A stretch of 64,000 nt of DNA from Parasitella parasitica NRRL 2501 (lineage: Eukaryota > Fungi > Mucoromycota). The position numbers were made by a program, and so were the translations under genes. Below, one piece after another: positions 6,295 to 64,000 of the stretch. Every line of letters starts with the position of its first letter. Position 1 is the stretch's first letter. Location: the NCBI GenBank assembly GCA_025201805.1, contig MU619334.1, positions 60,888 to 124,887 of the forward strand. Direction: 5' to 3'. The notes beneath the pieces were generated by a model that made no database searches, was not told where the DNA came from, and worked only from the letters and a program-made list of their open reading frames with translations.

Positions 6295-7079
6295 GAAAAA
6301 AAAGAGACGAGAGGCTCTACAGCAATCATCATACTGACAAGAATTTAATAGAAAGATACAGACTTTAGACGTACTTGGAATAAGGAAGAATACGCAGCGA
6401 AAGCAAAAGCTCGAGAAAATCGCGATCGTTTTGCAGAGAAGAACGACGAACGCAAGAAACTAGGCCTTCCTCCGTTGAAGGCACGGAGAGAAATTGTGGA
6501 TGATTCGTCCAAGGAAGCATTAAAAGCTCGTGAGGAGAAAGTGGATATCGAGTCTAATGTGGGTAAGATCCAAGTTGTTCAAGCTGCCGATTCAAGGAAA
6601 CAACCTGGTTTCTACTGTAAGGCCTGTGATATCACAATCAAGGACAGTGTTACCTGGATCGACCATTTGAACGGTAGAAAGCGTAAGTTTGCTTAGGTTG
6701 CCAAGTGTTTAGCTCGATATTCAACCATTGGGTTAGATTTAAACAATATTGGCGTGTCGAGTAAGGTGGAGAAAGCCAATTTGAGTTCAGTCAAGGAGCG
6801 ATTAGCAATGTTGAAAAGAAAAAAGGAGAACCCTGAAAAAGAGGAATACAGTAAGCTGAATTATGTTCTGTTGCGGGTTGGTGCGGCTAACAGCTCCATG
6901 TAGACCTGGATGATAGATTAGCAGCGATAAAGCAGCAAGAAGATGAGGAACGACAAAAGAGGAGAGACAAAAAGAAGCAAAAGAAAGATCACAAAAAGAA
7001 ATCTGCTGCTAATGATGATGGCGACGATGAGATGGCCAAGATGATGGGATTCTCGGGTTTTGGATCATCGAAAGCATAA
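6226..7079 (+). CDS. SNU23: U4/U6.U5 tri-snRNP zinc-finger protein Snu23/ZMAT2 (4 exons)
   Basis: DFRRTWNKEEY, the matrin-type finger GFYCKACDITIKDSVTWIDHLNGRKH, and C-terminal MAKMMGFSGFGSSK. Confidence 0.9.
6259..6293. repeat. (AAT)n microsatellite in Snu23 intron 1
   Basis: About 11-12 AAT units just after the GTGAGT donor. Confidence 0.9.
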
Positions 7080-56509: not shown

Positions 56510-57925
56510 GTCCACATCGCCAAGCTCTTCTAGCCAAGTGAAGGAATCCCGTTTCAAAACATTACTGAAATCGAAAAAAGCAGAGGTCCGCAAGCAAGAT
56601 CCTTCCGAGGAAAAAGTCTTGACAAAAAAACTAATCAAAATGATGATCAAAATGATGAAGACTTTGTAAGTACTCTGTGATGTATTCTTGTCAATGCATA
56701 TTGACATGATCTGTTCTAGTTCTGAAACAGCTTGATTTATCAGAAAAGTTTAATAGAAATTAATCAGGTGAAGATCCGTTTATTACATTCAAAAATAGAG
56801 GGTTTATATACTTTCTATGAACTGGGTGAAGCGATGTGAAGATAAAGGTTTTAGTGATGAGATCCGGGAGATAGGGCAGACTGTATCTATCCTAAATGTC
56901 ATGTCATATTATTTTATGATATGATGTTTTAGAATTGAAACATCACTATCCACAAACAGATAGAAAGATCAGCCATTACCCAAATCTTGCATCGTTGAAA
57001 CGTCTCAAATTGTATGGAATCCAAGTTTACTGTAAGTCTCTACTTCATGCATGCCAAAATTGACTGATATACGCGCTAAAACTCTTGTGAAAAAATATAG
57101 TAAATCAAATAATTATCTACAGCCTTTCAAGAACATCATCGTCGTACTGGGTGTTCCTTCGCGAGCAAAGCATATGCATACCTTCCATTAGCGCGTTATT
57201 TCAAAATCAGCTGCGGTTATTTGTGGTCTTTGAACGAAATGCTTAAAGAAGTCGATTGTAATTTTCAGGAGTTTTTGAAGGAAAGCAATGAAGAGCACAT
57301 TTCATCTTCTGATTCCGAGTGTGTCTTGCCCGAAGTATCGCCAAGAAAAAAATAGAAGAACAAAGCATAGTTGTATTGTTTTTATTTTTCATCTTCTGCC
57401 TTTCCTTTTTTTTTTTTATATATCATTTCATTCTATATCAACTCTTTTTATCATTTCATATATAAAAGCAAGTGATGTATCAATTATATACAATACTCAA
57501 TAAAACCCATTCAATTTGCTAAATCTGAACTTATCTTCCTTATCAACTCCAAAATGAAAACAGAGAGCAGTACATTGGATTACAAACTCATTTAATATTA
57601 TAGTCTTATTTAAAATGGCAAACAATTGTCTTTTTAGGTCAAGTCAAATTGGCTTTCCTAAGGGTTATTGTCGGCTACGCTGAGAAGCTTTAATTCTTTC
57701 TTTTCATTCTTATAGCTAACTAGTATGGTAAAAAACACTTTTTTTTCAATAAAGATGGACAAAACAATGTCTATAATGAAGAGAGAGAAAGAGTCTTTGA
57801 TCTAATGGAAGGTATGTTGACCGAAATCGTTGATCCAAACATAGTACTCGAGCCAAAAGTCCTACCTGAGTCTCAATACCAGCAGACAATGACCAGACCA
57901 GCAAGGTATTTATCGACCGAATGAT
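56510..57925 (+). pseudogene. Degraded coding remnants of unknown family
   Basis: Short coding-like patches with intron-like signals and many stops (NQNDDQNDEDF; FQEFLKESNEEHISSSDSECVLPEVSPRKK; DGQNNVYNEERERVFDLMEGMLTE). Confidence 0.3.
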
Positions 57926-58193
57926 AGGGGCCGCACGGATTTTGGTAAAATGTACACCTCATTACAAATTAAGAAGCCTAATGATATTGGCTATTCTTCG
58001 TTATGTGATTTAGTTACTTTCATTTGCATAACGGACGAAAGCAAGATGATGCCATCCACTCATCATGATAATGAGTCCCACAACAACAGCCCAGCCTTGC
58101 ACAAGAATACGCACGTACACGGGCAGCAACAGCAACAAGGTCTTGGTTTTGTTAGATATACATATTTAATGATGAGATGAATAAAGCAAAGAC

Positions 58194-60053
58194 TTATCCT
58201 TCAGCATGGACAACAGAGCTTGTTCTTTTTTGGCCTTTGGATGGAGAGAAATGCACCGGCACATGATTGACAGTGTTCCTTGGCGGGGATGATGAACGAT
58301 AATCAAGAATGTCATTGCTTATGTCTACAAGACCATAATCTTCTTCGGCTTTTGATAGTTGGACGATCACTTTTCTTCCATTGTCTATGGTACATTTCTT
58401 CCAATTGTACAAAGCGATCAAGGAAAAACGGAACTGGTCTAATCCGATAAAACTCTCTGGGATAGTAAACGACCCAACTTTATAAGCAACAGAGCACCCA
58501 TCAAAACTAAACAGCTGCGAAATGTAGGCTCGTCTTCCAGAAAAGTCGAAATAGTTGATACGAGTGTTGGTGTTGCCAAGGAGAAGATTGATATCATTGG
58601 AAATACAGGCGTTGATACGGAGGTTTTTGCTCTGTTGATGAGTCAGTACATCAGTCGACACACTTGTCTTCTTGAATTCATTTGAACAAAGGTCGTATTG
58701 TTCTTTGGCTTCTTTACTTCTCACAATCAAATCAATTCTGCGGCCGTATTCAGATTCATCTTCCGTGAGTATCTTCATTCTTTTGGTTGATCGTGATACC
58801 GTTTCACCGTCGTAAAAGGTAATGTTGGTATCTTTCATTAACAAGTCATCAAGTAACTGGGAAAACATTCTGAGGTGAGTGGCTTCTGATAGCCTTTGTT
58901 CGTTTTTGTATACTTTAAAGCATCTAACCCTACATTGTAAATGTAAAATTAAAAAAACGGGTTACAAGTCTTAGGCTAGTATACTTACAGAGAACTAACA
59001 ATACATAAAATTGCGTATCTTTCAGATCCTTTGTTTGTGATTTTGGCCTTTTCATTATCCAAGTACACCAAGATGCGGGAAATATCTTCACTAAATATTG
59101 TCATAAAAAAAAGGCCTTGATTCCCATTTACACCCCCCCCCATTTCTTTACTCCATACTTACTCGAATTGGAACTGATTCAAATCATCAAATATTTGATT
59201 TATCATTTCCTTTGTTTCTGCTGGACAGCTGGTTTGATATTCGCTTTTATTGACATTGCATGAGTTGCAAATCTGTCGGAAAATACTTGGCGAAATGACT
59301 TTTTGATACAATTCTTTATATCTGTCACTCAATAAATTGATACATGAAGAATTGAGCAGCTTTAAGAATTCTATTTCAACAGTCGAACTGCCCAATTTGA
59401 GGCTTCCTGCGTTCGCCAGCATTAAAGATTTGAGTGAGAACTTGGCTTCTTTCTTTTTGTCGTCTTTATCATCAGCCTCCTCATTGTCAGCCTCCTCATT
59501 GTCAGCCGCCTCATTGTCAGCTTCGTCATCATCGTCAGCCTCCTCACCATCGCCAGCTTCATCATCATTGTCAGCCTTGTCGTCTTCATCTTCATTGGCG
59601 GCGGTATTTAATACATCAGCAGCCCCTTTGATGTTTGTCAGTCTGAGAGAACGAATGGCCTTCCTCTTCAGTTTATTAGAGCATGTTAGCGTACCAACTT
59701 GAGATATAATATGATTAGGCATACTTTGGCAACTACAATCTGATGAATATACTTGAATGTAGGGCTAGTTTTCTTTATCCTAAATGGATGTTAAAAAATG
59801 TTTAAAGAGTTGAAGTAGCCCGTACTTACATTCCAACCAGCGGTTTGCCTGGTCTGACAATGACCACGGAATTGTTGTACGCCTTTGCCCAAGCTCGTTC
59901 CAATGATATAGCTTTATCATTTGATGATAGCTTTACAGATATATCTTCAATCTTCCTCTCGTTCATTTTAGTGAAATGTTTGAAGGTGGGTTTGCTATGA
60001 AGCCTCAAGTAGTTGGCTATAAGCGTGTTTTGTCTTTCCATCTTGATTTGCAT
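58194..60053 (-). CDS. PD-(D/E)xK restriction-endonuclease-fold protein of a Mucoromycota-expanded type (4 exons, apparently intact)
   Basis: The last exon has SEA, DGETVSRSTK, GRRIDLIV, LCSNEFKK and QQSKNLRIN (E...D...ExK pattern). GT-AG introns at about 59829-59780, 59162-59089 and 58989-58931 appear to keep the frame. Start is 60053 or 60041. Confidence 0.7.
59470..59595 (-). repeat. Coding 15-nt minisatellite giving (ADNEE)-type acidic repeats
   Basis: TCAGCCTCCTCATTG units on the + strand. Protein reads ADNDDEAGDGEEADDDDEADNEAADNEEADNEEADD. Confidence 0.8.
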
Positions 60054-60180
60054 TGAATAAAAAAAAAAGATGACAACTGCATATTTTTTTTTGGCGTGTT
60101 GAAATATGACAAAAATTGCGTCACCAATTGACGCTTCAAAAAAAAGACGTTTTATTCTCGGAAACTTCTGTAGCTTCTTG

Positions 60181-61197
60181 GTGTCTTGCAATAATGACAT
60201 TTAGACCTTAGGCTATGTCGGTAGCAGCCTTAGGCAGCGCTCTTAGTGAAAATGTAGTTGTACTCTTGAACTCTATTGAGGGAAACCACGTAAGCACTAT
60301 ATGAGTAGCGTAATTATTGCAAGACATCATTTTAATAATATGATTTTCAAGTCGAGGTAAGCATTACAATAGAAGCAAGTATGACCTAAGCTAATCATAT
60401 TGTTAGTTTTCTTGGTTTGGAGTATATATGCACGTTAGTGTCTTGCAATAATGTAGGAATCTGACATTTAGACCTTAGGCTATGTCGGTAGCAGCCTTAG
60501 GCAGCGCCCTTAGTGAAAATGTAGCTGTGCTCTTGAACTCTATTGAGGGAAACCACGTAAGCACTATATGAGTAGCGTAATTATTGCAAGACATCATTTT
60601 AATAATATGATTTCAAGTCGAGGTAAGCATTACGATAGAAGTAAGTATGACCTGAGCTAATTGTATTTTTTATTTTCCTTATTTTGGAGCAAATACAGAC
60701 ATTAGTGTCTTGCAGTAATGTAGGAATCTGACATTTAGACCTTAGGCTATGTCGGTAGCAGCCTTAGGCAGCGCCCTTAGTGAAAATGTAGCTGTGCTCT
60801 TGAACTCTATTGAGGGAAACCACGTAAGCACTATATGAGTAGCGTAATTATTGCAAGACATCATTTTAATAATATGATTTCAAGTCGAGGTAAGCATTAC
60901 GATAGAAGTAAGTATGACCTGAGCTAATTGTATTTTTTATTTTCCTTATTTTGGAGCAAATACAGACATTAGTGTCTTGCAGTAATGTAGGAATCTGACA
61001 TTTAGACCTTAGGCTATGTCGGTAGCAGCCTTAGGCAGCGCCCTTAGTGAAAATGTAGCTGTGCTCTTGAACTCTATTGAGGGAAACCACGTAAGCACTA
61101 TATGAGTAGCGTAATTATTGCAAGACATCATTTTAATAATATGATTTCAAGTTAAGGTAAGCATTACAATAGAAGCAAGTATAATCTGAGCTAATCG
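60181..61197. repeat. Tandem array of ~3.8 units with a 267-bp period
   Basis: The ATGTCGGTAGCAGCC landmark recurs at 60215, 60482, 60749 and 61016. Each unit contains TGTCTTGCA(A/G)TAAT...ATTATTGCAAGACA. Confidence 0.97.
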
Positions 61198-62060
61198 TGT
61201 AATACTGATTCCATTAAAAGAAGTAAACAACGTCGGTCGCTTCAAGCTTCGAGTAAGCTATCATCGCTTGGATCACTACGGCAATTCACTCTTCCGCAGA
61301 ATGGGAAACACTTGGTGGCAATGAAGACATTCATATTTGAAGTATCTAATGCTATCGATTATCTTCCTCAGCTGTATTCTGCTGCTATCATTAACGCTGC
61401 TACTACCATTATATTTTCATTACAAGCTAATTCCTAATTGTCCCCATCTTCATCCCGAACAGTGGAAGAAAATGATGGTATCATCTGTCTGGCGTCTCGG
61501 ACGGGCGTGGCTGCGTACATATCCCAAAAATTCTAATGCACATATCTCAAACTCTAAATGCGGAAACAAGTTGTTCGTAGTCAAAATGCATTCATTATTG
61601 TGATGGTAAATCTTGTATACTTGAAATTTAAACTATACAGAAATAAAAATTATTAGTAAATACGGCATGTAGTTGAAATTCTAGTACATGGTGGAATAGA
61701 TCGATAATTTTATGTAGAAAAAGAAACCAAAAGCAAAAGTCTTTTTTAAAGAGAAAAAAAGACATAGCCTTCATTAAAGCTATATTATATTTTACAGGAT
61801 TTCGAAAAAATAAAAAAAGGGTTATTATTATGTGTGAACGTTCGCTCACGTATGCTGTAGTTGAGATTTAGACACCACATAGGGTTTGAAAATAGATACA
61901 TAAGTTGTAAATAATACAACCGAAAAATAAGAAGCAATAGCTAAATGTGTGGATTGTGCTAATGAGACATACAAACAATGACCGTTTTCAATCAATGACC
62001 AATTCGGGATCGATTGTTCTACTTTTGGAAGAGACAAGATCCAAAACACATACTTTTCGC

Positions 62061-63536
62061 ATGGTAGAATCACAACAGCAACAGCAACAATCTTCTAGCG
62101 ATTCCAACAACAGGAGGCCCATGTTATGGACCCATGTTGTCAAATCTCGAAAAAAAGGCAAAAATCAAAAGGAACAGATTGTTTCTTTCAACCCAACCTT
62201 GATAACGAGACCAGTAACTGAGGCAGAGTCGACTCAGAATGCACTCAACGGCGCTACACCTCCGGCTCCCATGGCCGTTATACGTCCGTTCATTAAAGGA
62301 ATGGAGCAGGATTCTATATTAATTGACCTTACGACTATCAAAGATAGATCGCTCTTGAACAAAGAACTTCTCAAGTTCAACGAGGAAGCTGAAAAACATG
62401 GCCTTACTGAAGAATTTTTGGGTTATCGACGCCAAACCCGTAAATATCTTGGACATGAATTCCTCGAAACGATGTGGACTCCTTCTTCTCCTAGCCGCCA
62501 GACTATCATTGACTCTGGTATCACTCTTGAAGATGGCACCTTTGTTAAAGGTTTCCCATCCTACAACGCGGACGCCACCATTGTTCGCTTGAAGTTGGAA
62601 AACCTTCCTTTTCTTCCAGCAATGGAACTAAAAGACGAAATGGCAAAACGTTTGTCTGATTTTGGCAATGTTTTGGACCATGGCATCTCTAAAGCAGATG
62701 GCATCTTTCATGGGGAAGGTTATGCTACCTTAAACCTCACCGTCAAAAACTCTGCTGAGAGTCAGTGTCAGGAAACACACACTCATGGATCATCTTGTTC
62801 GCGCTTCAACCAATTGGAGCAGCTATCTCGGGTTATTATTTGGGACCCTCTTGCAATTGATCCTCGCAAGATTCTCTTACAATGGGATACTATGCCTAAC
62901 TTTTGTCGCAACTGTCAAGCTTCTGATCACTGCCGTGCGGATTGCCCGGATTACAAAAAATGGGTTAGATGTTACCATTGCAACAAACATGGGCATGTTG
63001 CCAAAAACTGTGACCGAAACAATTCTGAGTCAGTGCCAGCAAAAGTGAGGGTTGTGGAATCCTCCCCTTCCAAAACCAAGGATCGCAAAAGCAATAAAAC
63101 TACTGCCTCATACAAAGCGAATACCCAGTCATCAGTTGCTACTGGTACTGGTACTGATATTTCCAATTCGAATTATGTTAGCATCGACGGGAAAGAAGAG
63201 GACCAGTTGATGGGCGAAGTTTCTCGCCCACCCTATGAGACAGCAGACGAGCTAATGGGAGTATCACTAGATTCTGCTGCCACGGATACATCGAATGAGG
63301 GTTTTGAGGATACCCTTCCTAAATCCACTTCTGTTATTTCTGATGCTATGGCATTAACCCTTGTCTCCCGTGATATACCGACGGATCGATCTTCTACTGT
63401 GGATCCTTCCAAACCAGCCTCGAAATTTGCTAGAAGAAACAGTTCTTCTGATATTAGTTCCATAAGAAATCAAGTTAATGAACAGAGCAGCTTGCTTCCT
63501 GCCTCGCCAGGATTCCAACCTCCGCTTAATCAATAA
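62061..63536 (+). CDS. LINE ORF1 (Gag-like, RRM-like region + two CCHC knuckles)
   Basis: LKLENLPFL...LSDFGNVLDHG...FHGEGYATL, CRNCQASDHCRADC and CYHCNKHGHVAKNC. The frame is open from 61947, so the start codon is uncertain. Confidence 0.88.
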   Translation: MVESQQQQQQSSSDSNNRRPMLWTHVVKSRKKGKNQKEQIVSFNPTLITRPVTEAESTQNALNGATPPAPMAVIRPFIKGMEQDSILIDLTTIKDRSLLNKELLKFNEEAEKHGLTEEFLGYRRQTRKYLGHEFLETMWTPSSPSRQTIIDSGITLEDGTFVKGFPSYNADATIVRLKLENLPFLPAMELKDEMAKRLSDFGNVLDHGISKADGIFHGEGYATLNLTVKNSAESQCQETHTHGSSCSRFNQLEQLSRVIIWDPLAIDPRKILLQWDTMPNFCRNCQASDHCRADCPDYKKWVRCYHCNKHGHVAKNCDRNNSESVPAKVRVVESSPSKTKDRKSNKTTASYKANTQSSVATGTGTDISNSNYVSIDGKEEDQLMGEVSRPPYETADELMGVSLDSAATDTSNEGFEDTLPKSTSVISDAMALTLVSRDIPTDRSSTVDPSKPASKFARRNSSSDISSIRNQVNEQSSLLPASPGFQPPLNQ

Positions 63537-63540
63537 TTTA

Positions 63541-64000
63541 ATGAATATTATACACCATACAGTTAAAATCGCCACCCTTAATTGCCGTGGCCTCAAAAAA
63601 TCAGAAAATCCAAAAAAAAGACAACAATTCATTAGATATCTTAGAACACTAGATTACGATATTTTAGTGCTCCAAGAAACACACGCAACAGACTCTATTA
63701 CCATGGATCTTTTAAATAATCATTTTCAAAGCAAGTCGAGCCATTGGACTCAACATTGCGGCATCGTATCTTTATCCACCAAATTTTCAATTCATCCTAT
63801 ATCTGAAGGCATTGATGGCGGTCGTTATATCCTAGCATCCATTCATTTGACACAGGACTATGAACAATCAACTACTACGCCTCCACTAGCAACTATATTA
63901 AACATTTATGGTCGATCAGCCCTTCATTCTGTTCGATCAGCTTTTTATTTAGAATTACTTGACATTCCCATTGTCAAAGACACTATTACATCAACACCCA
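63541..64000 (+). CDS. LINE ORF2 N-terminus (APE endonuclease), partial
   Basis: MNIIHHTVKIATLNCRGLKK...YDILVLQETH...WTQHCGIVSL...GGRYIL...ILNIYG, open to the window end. Confidence 0.92.
   Translation, partial: MNIIHHTVKIATLNCRGLKKSENPKKRQQFIRYLRTLDYDILVLQETHATDSITMDLLNNHFQSKSSHWTQHCGIVSLSTKFSIHPISEGIDGGRYILASIHLTQDYEQSTTTPPLATILNIYGRSALHSVRSAFYLELLDIPIVKDTITSTP

Follow-up and report, generated by a model that had tools for sequence, protein, structure and literature searches.

Why should a fungal gene for a nuclease-like protein be preceded, on the opposite strand, by a tandem array of nearly identical units, and do the two belong together? The question is raised by a locus (positions 58194-61197) in a stretch of 64,000 nucleotides from Parasitella parasitica NRRL 2501 (Mucoromycota; GenBank assembly GCA_025201805.1, contig MU619334.1, positions 60,888 to 124,887 of the forward strand); this whole stretch is called the window below. 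A sequence-only reading of the window had described an intact PD-(D/E)xK nuclease gene with an adjacent array of conserved structured cores and variable segments, and had proposed either a selfish nuclease/non-coding RNA (ncRNA) module or a mobile unit with repeated ends. Our best explanation is a module of two genes, found only in Mucorales, that consists of a gene for a structured RNA and a divergently oriented gene of a nuclease-motif protein family. The structure of the RNA is demonstrated by covariation, the protein is recognised by its fold and catalytic motif, and the two genes occur together at orthologous as well as paralogous loci.

Organisation of the tandem array

The array starts about 130 bp upstream of the gene and contains four 267-bp units, as had been read from the sequence, and three approaches agree on this layout. 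Tandem Repeats Finder reports a period of 267 with 3.7 copies and 96% matches at 60195-61195, a repeat search places four in-register copies at 60133, 60400, 60667 and 60934, and the covariance model described below finds four RNA copies. With the tail of the last copy included, the array spans 60180-61197, and its first RNA copy begins 124 or 136 bp upstream of the ATG (at 60056 or 60044, respectively). Each unit consists of an invariant core of about 165 nt (slightly unlike the earlier estimate of about 190 nt), a conserved 3' tail of about 60 nt ending in GCTAAT, and some 45 nt that repeat the 5' flank, and carries a perfect 14-bp inverted repeat with arms 127 nt apart. A BLAST search of the unit against the 32.8-Mb genome identified no place besides its own locus. 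The features are as follows.

60057 to 60179, no strand assigned: intergenic region of about 125 bp between the divergent RNA and protein genes, putative promoter
60180 to 60334, plus strand: RNA copy 1 (covariance model, 165 bits)
60335 to 60436, plus strand: spacer 1, the conserved 3' tail of the RNA followed by a copy of its 5' flank
60437 to 60601, plus strand: RNA copy 2, used as reference (covariance model, 198.9 bits)
60602 to 60703, plus strand: spacer 2, identical to spacer 3 (60869 to 60970)
60704 to 60868, plus strand: RNA copy 3 (covariance model, 196.7 bits)
60971 to 61135, plus strand: RNA copy 4 (covariance model, 196.7 bits)
61136 to 61197, plus strand: 3' tail of the last copy, with unique flank after GCTAAT that aligns with the flank of the single copy in Pilaira (locus L017)

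The segments that follow GCTAAT do differ between units, although spacer 1 is still 85% identical to spacers 2 and 3, in keeping with the earlier caveat that these segments can be aligned; a second caveat, that the segment of the fourth unit may simply be flank, is borne out by its alignment with the single-copy Pilaira flank. When searched against the rest of the genome, the spacers gave no other match at E<=10. The spacer of the window is homologous, duplication junction included, to that of the array at locus L018, and the tandem arrangement is therefore older than the split of those two species. Judged from these alignments, the "variable segments" are ordinary, less constrained spacers of a tandem small-RNA gene array, and not guides.

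Copy 1 has a 10-nt deletion that takes out the otherwise invariant junction motif GUAGGAAUC, and is probably impaired for that reason. Motifs resembling TGACGTCA (CRE/bZIP-type) are seen at about 60117-60134, in the region common to the RNA gene and the protein gene. Motifs of this kind also precede the RNA in M. hiemalis, in Thamnidium, in R. stolonifer and at the copy on contig C24 of the present genome, and are not present in the internal units of the array.

The core encodes a structured RNA

The core folds as a multi-helix junction closed by a terminal helix of 14-16 bp, with a number of invariant unpaired motifs. The secondary structure was derived with RNAalifold and from pair counts, and its inner junction is drawn with P3/P4 and P5 as alternatives. 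In copy 2, the terminal helix P1 pairs 60439-60452 with 60580-60593, P2 pairs 60461-60467 with 60482-60488, and the long-range helix P5 pairs 60519-60524 with 60564-60569 (AUGUAG with CUAUAU). The unpaired motifs GUAGGAAUC, UAGACC, GGUAGCAG, CCUUAGUGAAAA and AGUAGCGUA are invariant, and are likely to be sites of protein binding or tertiary contact.

Compensatory changes were found in all three of these helices, in agreement with the earlier description of the cores as structured. In an alignment made with MAFFT only, of eight diverged copies and not fitted to the model, 92% of cells are paired, and double changes occur in 17 pairs, compared to 7.9+-2.0 in shuffled alignments (0 out of 500 reaching 17) and 1-6 in slid controls; the numbers obtained with the model-fitted alignment are similar. 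P2 is fully compensatory in the diverged copy on contig C93. Read on the plus strand, all the variable pairs (six in P1, four in P2) keep their pairing, mostly through G.U and once through a CG-to-UA change, whereas on the minus strand five of those in P1 turn into C.A or A.C mismatches. This asymmetry argues for an RNA, encoded on the plus strand, rather than for a DNA element.

A search of Rfam over 57000-64000 at E<=1 gave nothing relevant, and the core alone, at E<=10, matched only DUF3800-V, on the minus strand and with a chance-level score of 14 bits. No description of this RNA, or of its pairing with a nuclease, was found in the literature. Sequence comparison thus gives good support to the view that the core represents a previously undescribed structured RNA family of about 160 nt, absent from Rfam. 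A tentative reading as an RNA polymerase III gene was also considered: four to six T residues come after the 3' arm in the window, in L018 and in M. hiemalis, although no such run is seen in Pilaira, Thamnidium or the paralogous copies.

The nuclease-like gene and its protein family

The gene on the minus strand is intact by manual reading and comprises four exons, encoding 544 codons and a stop. Exon lengths of 227, 570, 102 and 736 nt add up to 1635 nt, in frame, and the introns of 97, 72 and 59 nt are all of the GT..AG type. The exons are listed with their splice sites.

59830 to 60056, minus strand: exon 1, encoding a small N-terminal helical domain (donor GTAAGT at 59829)
59163 to 59732, minus strand: exon 2 (acceptor TTGTAG ending at 59733, donor at 59162)
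58989 to 59090, minus strand: exon 3, 34 codons (acceptor TTTAG ending at 59091, donor at 58988)
58194 to 58929, minus strand: exon 4, encoding the predicted PD-(D/E)xK (restriction-endonuclease-fold) domain and the stop codon, as assigned from family alignments, the AlphaFold2 (AF2) model of homologue P0041, and VIA-align

The likely start is the ATG at 60056-60054 (MQIKMERQ...), with an alternative ATG at 60044. Exon 1 is 73-75% conserved at loci L017, L018 and L022 (tblastn) and matches the N-terminus of the full-length homologue P0041. Exon 2 encodes an acidic low-complexity stretch followed by a helical region that is conserved by tblastn, and exon 3 is 74-86% identical to its orthologues. 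The acidic stretch, rich in D, E, A and N, is encoded by imperfect tandem repeats of 9-30 nt at 59460-59576, and its length differs among orthologues. In all these searches the exons were used one by one, and the natural full-length homologue P0041 stood for the whole protein.

By sequence, the exons have no significant match to the curated families of Pfam or NCBIfam and none in the PDB. Among 149 family members, sub-threshold matches were obtained to PDDEXK_4 (two members, E 0.0023), DUF3799 (one) and RE_AlwI (one), and neither these members nor the exons of the window matched RuvC/OrfB-type domains of Pfam. A word search with the exons returned only "hypothetical" Mucorales proteins, from Pilaira, Rhizopus, Mucor, Thamnidium, Backusella and a record labelled Phycomyces nitens. 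The family grew to 766 clusters at E<=1e-3 when 1.84 billion representatives were searched with a profile; its full-length members have 450-600 residues, with the matched domain at the C-terminus. All members with a checked source are from Mucorales, the named members span this order, and the clusters from ESM Atlas are from Mucoromycota only. The gene is one of a large protein family, spread through Mucorales and so far uncharacterised, whose nuclease motif is intact.

The fold of exon 4 was assigned from the model of P0041 through the family alignment. Direct modelling of exon 4 from 18 sequences was poor (predicted local distance difference test, pLDDT, 55) and its Foldseek matches are meaningless, while the AF2 model of P0041, based on 149 sequences, reached a pLDDT of 81.9 and a predicted template-modelling score (pTM) of 0.73. 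Secondary structure elements of this model (H349-363, E369-377, E399-408, E411-421, H427-452 and E458-465) follow the alpha-beta-beta-beta-alpha-beta core that defines the PD-(D/E)xK superfamily. Foldseek found nothing significant with the P0041 model, and the fold was seen only by VIA-align, in which residues ~325-523 were compared with 48,161 chains. Among the restriction-endonuclease-fold matches, DrdV has Z 9.3 (143 residues at a root-mean-square deviation, rmsd, of 2.9), followed by BpuSI (Z 8.8), TT1808 (Z 8.0) and the nuclease domain of HsdR (Z 7.5); for these four the rmsd is 2.9-4.4 over 119-157 residues. A putative restriction-endonuclease domain, 9y1l, has Z 7.2, and there are weaker matches to NgoMIV, Can2 and EcoRI. 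The best structural match is a protein chain of the human mitoribosomal large subunit (3j7y_5 / 7a5f_s3; Z 10.7, 210 residues), which covers both helical and nuclease-like domains.

The putative active site consists of E42, D66, E84-x-K86 and Q98 (exon-4 numbering). Across the 149 family sequences, E42 is kept in 110 of 121, D66 in 128 of 134, E84 in 126 of 131 and K86 in 128 of 132; that is, the first E is conserved in 91% of the family and the D, E, K and Q in 95-98%. The first four residues correspond to E375, D401, E419 and K421 of the P0041 model and lie on the strands expected for a PD-(D/E)xK site, with an acidic residue on strand 2, the (D/E)xK on strand 3, and a glutamate upstream. 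Fold, catalytic residues and the continuous four-exon frame thus agree with the earlier description, and support the prediction, made at the level of fold and motif, that the gene encodes an intact PD-(D/E)xK nuclease.

Orthologous loci in other Mucorales

The RNA was found beside orthologues of the nuclease-like gene in several other Mucorales, a co-occurrence that the sequence-only reading had marked as worth looking for. Pilaira anomala (L017) has a single RNA copy, in which the core is 97% identical to that of the window, while the coding sequence reaches 82% and the flank 69%. Three copies with a period of 281 are present in a Joint Genome Institute (JGI) assembly (3300077052), two with a period of 268 in Thamnidium elegans, and one in Mucor hiemalis, at a distance of 3.7 kb; what is left beside the gene in Rhizopus stolonifer is a decayed remnant. 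The contigs of L019 and L020 end inside an RNA unit. Across genera the core is 81-97% conserved, without a hypervariable, guide-like end, and the pair is kept while the genes around it vary. Two pattern scans of metagenomes for the RNA gave, in the first, no match and, in the second, three chance 20-mers in unrelated DNA (L030-L032).

Some of these loci show further rearrangements. In R. stolonifer (L023 6169-6883) and M. hiemalis (L021 6179-7265), exon-4 matches are spread over several frames or partly duplicated, which suggests, at the level of sequence, that these orthologues are frameshifted or rearranged, i.e. pseudogenised, in those assemblies. At locus L022 (labelled Phycomyces nitens, GCA_025531835.1) the block corresponding to 57939-60144 of the window, which holds exactly the gene with its promoter region, has the reverse orientation with respect to the left flank (57626-57926), and no RNA is present within 6 kb; from this comparison the gene cassette seems able to rearrange without the RNA. 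The RNA copy at L034 is without its 3' hairpin region, and between it and exon 1 (6440-6690) lies a fragment that may be the C-terminal part of a transposase (...FHCETNWIERYW...).

Downstream of the array in the window, an open reading frame (ORF) of 529 residues (61947-63536, plus strand) encodes a CCHC zinc knuckle (Pfam zf-CCHC, E 2e-4) and has the look of a gag-like retroelement. It is probably an insertion, as it starts where the homology to the Pilaira flank stops.

Paralogous loci in the same genome

While BLAST places the unit at one locus only, covariance models identified further, deeply diverged copies. A model built from the orthologues only (R1) found RNA copies on contigs C93, C65 and C24, and a second model (R2) added one on C194, giving five RNA loci in 32.8 Mb, all but one of which adjoin a gene of the family. 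Three of the four diverged copies are each placed upstream of a paralogue of the protein gene and point away from it: on C24 at about 110 nt from the ATG, on C194 at about 0.5 kb and on C65 at 3.4 kb. The copy on C24 scores 92 bits beside a pseudogene-like paralogue. With about 16 paralogue sites in 32.8 Mb, we calculate the chance of adjacency within 4 kb as about 0.4% per locus, and the three adjacent cases are therefore not due to chance. The RNA gene is thus linked to the nuclease-like gene at the orthologous loci and, in this genome, on C24, C65 and C194, in line with the genome-wide association that the earlier reading had envisaged.

Two other paralogues have tandem arrays of their own, hairpin-rich, directly upstream and on the opposite strand, with 2.6 copies of 350 bp on C103 (L051 3983-4882) and 2.0 copies of 257 bp on C63 (L053 5681-6194). 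When compared with the RNA covariance model, with filters off, these arrays showed no demonstrable homology. They could represent further, more diverged partner RNAs.

A nuclease and its partner RNA?

We propose the following model for the module. The RNA gene and the protein gene would be expressed from a common bidirectional promoter of about 125 bp, and their products would form a functional pair, in which the RNA most likely binds the protein, either as a cofactor or as a controller or antidote. Tandem amplification has brought the RNA gene of this genome to four copies, with about 45 bp of its 5' flank and some 60 bp of its 3' tail included in the repeated unit. The module as a whole would belong to a selfish, duplicating gene family, because many diverged copies and pseudogenes exist and the flanking genes differ between genera.

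In its general form, a co-inherited nuclease and RNA module, probably selfish, with the RNA binding or controlling the protein, we give this reading an even chance. A more specific version, which we offer tentatively as a possibility, is a eukaryotic nuclease of restriction-endonuclease fold that needs, or is restrained by, its own structured RNA. This RNA would be either a cofactor, for targeting or activation, or an antidote, and the two would make up a selfish module, of the addiction or homing type, that is copied as a whole in mucoralean genomes. The suggestion of a selfish nuclease/ncRNA module in the sequence-only reading is thereby upheld as regards the structure of the RNA and its co-occurrence with the nuclease-like gene, and is given up as regards the guide array.

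Several observations weigh against a co-inherited module. The functional coupling of RNA and protein rests on genomic association only. The RNA was not found near the gene at L022, at L033 (Backusella) or at the locus of P0041, and at L034 it is on the same strand as the gene. Around some ten further paralogue loci of the present genome, no homologue of the RNA is present within 8 kb, and the copy on C93 has no detectable paralogue beside it, in a region where about 1.5 kb (L055 3138-4600, 2.5 kb off) reads N. All three RNA-linked paralogues look like pseudogenes, so that RNA and gene do not obviously decay together. Finally, the genome-wide covariance search scored only 150 of the first-look candidates, and may have missed RNA copies far from nuclease genes.

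Part of this evidence would fit an independent ncRNA gene whose role in the cell has nothing to do with the protein, and which is joined to the protein gene by a common bidirectional promoter and copied passively with the region. The RNA shows higher conservation than the protein (97% versus 82% with Pilaira), is still well folded beside the pseudogenised paralogues (as on C24), occurs solo on C93, and is lacking from many family members. A housekeeping RNA would, however, be expected at a stable locus independent of the gene, whereas four of the five RNA loci adjoin a family gene, always with the RNA upstream and, within the genome, always divergent, and the adjacency survives across genera whose other flanking genes differ. 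We therefore regard this explanation as rather unlikely, while counting it as the most serious rival.

It is less probable still that the RNA acts in cis on the nuclease-like gene, tuning it as an upstream antisense (promoter-associated) transcript or as the first exon of a spliced long non-coding RNA. Such a role would account for the short and conserved spacing to the ATG (about 110-230 bp), for the TGACGTCA-like motifs in the common intergenic region, and for the GTAAG motifs, resembling 5' splice sites, that are conserved in the core and about 35 nt past it. It is not usual, however, for a promoter-associated transcript to be maintained as a covarying junction of several helices with invariant unpaired motifs. 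The RNA also persists in M. hiemalis and on C65, where 3.4-3.7 kb separate it from the gene, and 3' splice sites between the units are not conserved in L018.

We see very little room for the view that the core is not an RNA gene at all and represents either tandem coding micro-exons or a DNA element, such as a miniature inverted-repeat transposable element (MITE) with 14-bp terminal inverted repeats. Each unit does contain a 29-codon ORF and GTAAG donors, the annotation of Pilaira L017 calls a gene of 159 residues at 2225-2835 that starts inside the core, and the 14-bp inverted repeat is perfect. The coding reading was rejected, as in our reading of the alignment the 29-codon ORF is frameshifted and stopped in L018, and substitutions track base pairing rather than codon position. 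The MITE reading was rejected as well, in view of the single locus at the level of BLAST, without target-site duplications, the deep divergence of the loci found with covariance models, and the strand-asymmetric G.U pairs and RNA-type compensatory changes in the arms. A search for long inverted repeats flanking the module found none, and the mobile unit with repeated ends that had been considered earlier was likewise abandoned.

Least credible of all is a guide-RNA array, in which a conserved scaffold with variable targeting segments would program the nuclease, as the adjoining nuclease gene and the differences after GCTAAT had suggested, for the segments are 85-100% identical to each other, show no further genomic match at E<=10 and are homologous to the spacer of the array in L018, the last of them is flank, and Pilaira and M. 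hiemalis have a single RNA copy.

Should RNA and protein indeed act together, as in the co-inherited module that we favour, this would be the first eukaryotic nuclease and partner-RNA module on the restriction-endonuclease fold, a counterpart of bacterial RNA-antitoxin and RNA-cofactor systems and of Fanzor; to our knowledge, no eukaryotic PD-(D/E)xK enzyme has a dedicated partner RNA. Its host fungi include human pathogens and genetically tractable species, e.g. Mucor lusitanicus. Even the conservative reading yields a new RNA family, a Mucorales-wide nuclease-motif family, and a testable genetic link between them.

Comparison with known systems

The restriction enzymes DrdV, BpuSI and HsdR (type IIL/IIG and type I) and the Uma2/TT1808-like proteins have the same fold, with E...D...ExK on the expected strands. 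They differ from the present family in showing no detectable sequence homology (Pfam, NCBIfam, PDB) to it, and the protein described here is without a methyltransferase or helicase partner, is eukaryotic and spliced, and has long helical N-terminal domains. The mitoribosomal chains 3j7y_5 / 7a5f_s3 illustrate that RNA-binding subunits of ribonucleoproteins can have a fold of this kind; no sequence similarity to them was detected, however, and the present family conserves its catalytic residues.

The array resembles those of 5S rRNA and small nuclear RNA (snRNA) genes, in which whole gene units are arranged head-to-tail with their promoter-proximal flank and 3' tail, copy number varies by species, and the 5' and 3' ends of the RNA pair in a terminal helix. 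It differs from them in the lack of an Rfam match even at E<=10, and in that the RNA is tied to loci beside one protein family, the copy on C93 excepted.

In the OMEGA/Fanzor systems, a TnpB- or IscB-type nuclease is encoded next to its omega-RNA, and Fanzor proteins occur in fungi, including Mucoromycota. These systems and the module of Mucorales have in common that a nuclease gene is accompanied by a structured RNA gene of its own, that a genome has several diverged copies, and that the whole looks selfish. Here, however, the fold is PD-(D/E)xK and not RuvC or HNH, the RNA is divergent from a putative common promoter whereas omega-RNA overlaps the 3' end of the gene, and neither a variable guide segment nor transposon ends were found. 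The scaffold-plus-guide RNA and the RuvC, HNH or Nop-type effector by which RNA-guided nucleases (CRISPR, OMEGA/Fanzor, TIGR-Tas) are defined are likewise lacking here.

With the type III toxin-antitoxin system ToxIN, the module has in common a tandem array of structured RNA immediately upstream of a nuclease gene, and neutralisation of the partner protein by the RNA is a plausible role here too. ToxIN is bacterial, however, with 36-nt repeats on the strand of the toxin gene and an endoribonuclease toxin of another fold, while the units described here are 267 bp long and lie on the strand opposite to the gene, and only one copy is present in Pilaira and in M. hiemalis; this does not fit tandem repeats that are co-transcribed with an endoribonuclease toxin. 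While effector fold, guide segment, strand and co-transcription set the module apart from both systems, Fanzor/OMEGA and type III toxin-antitoxin are its closest analogies.

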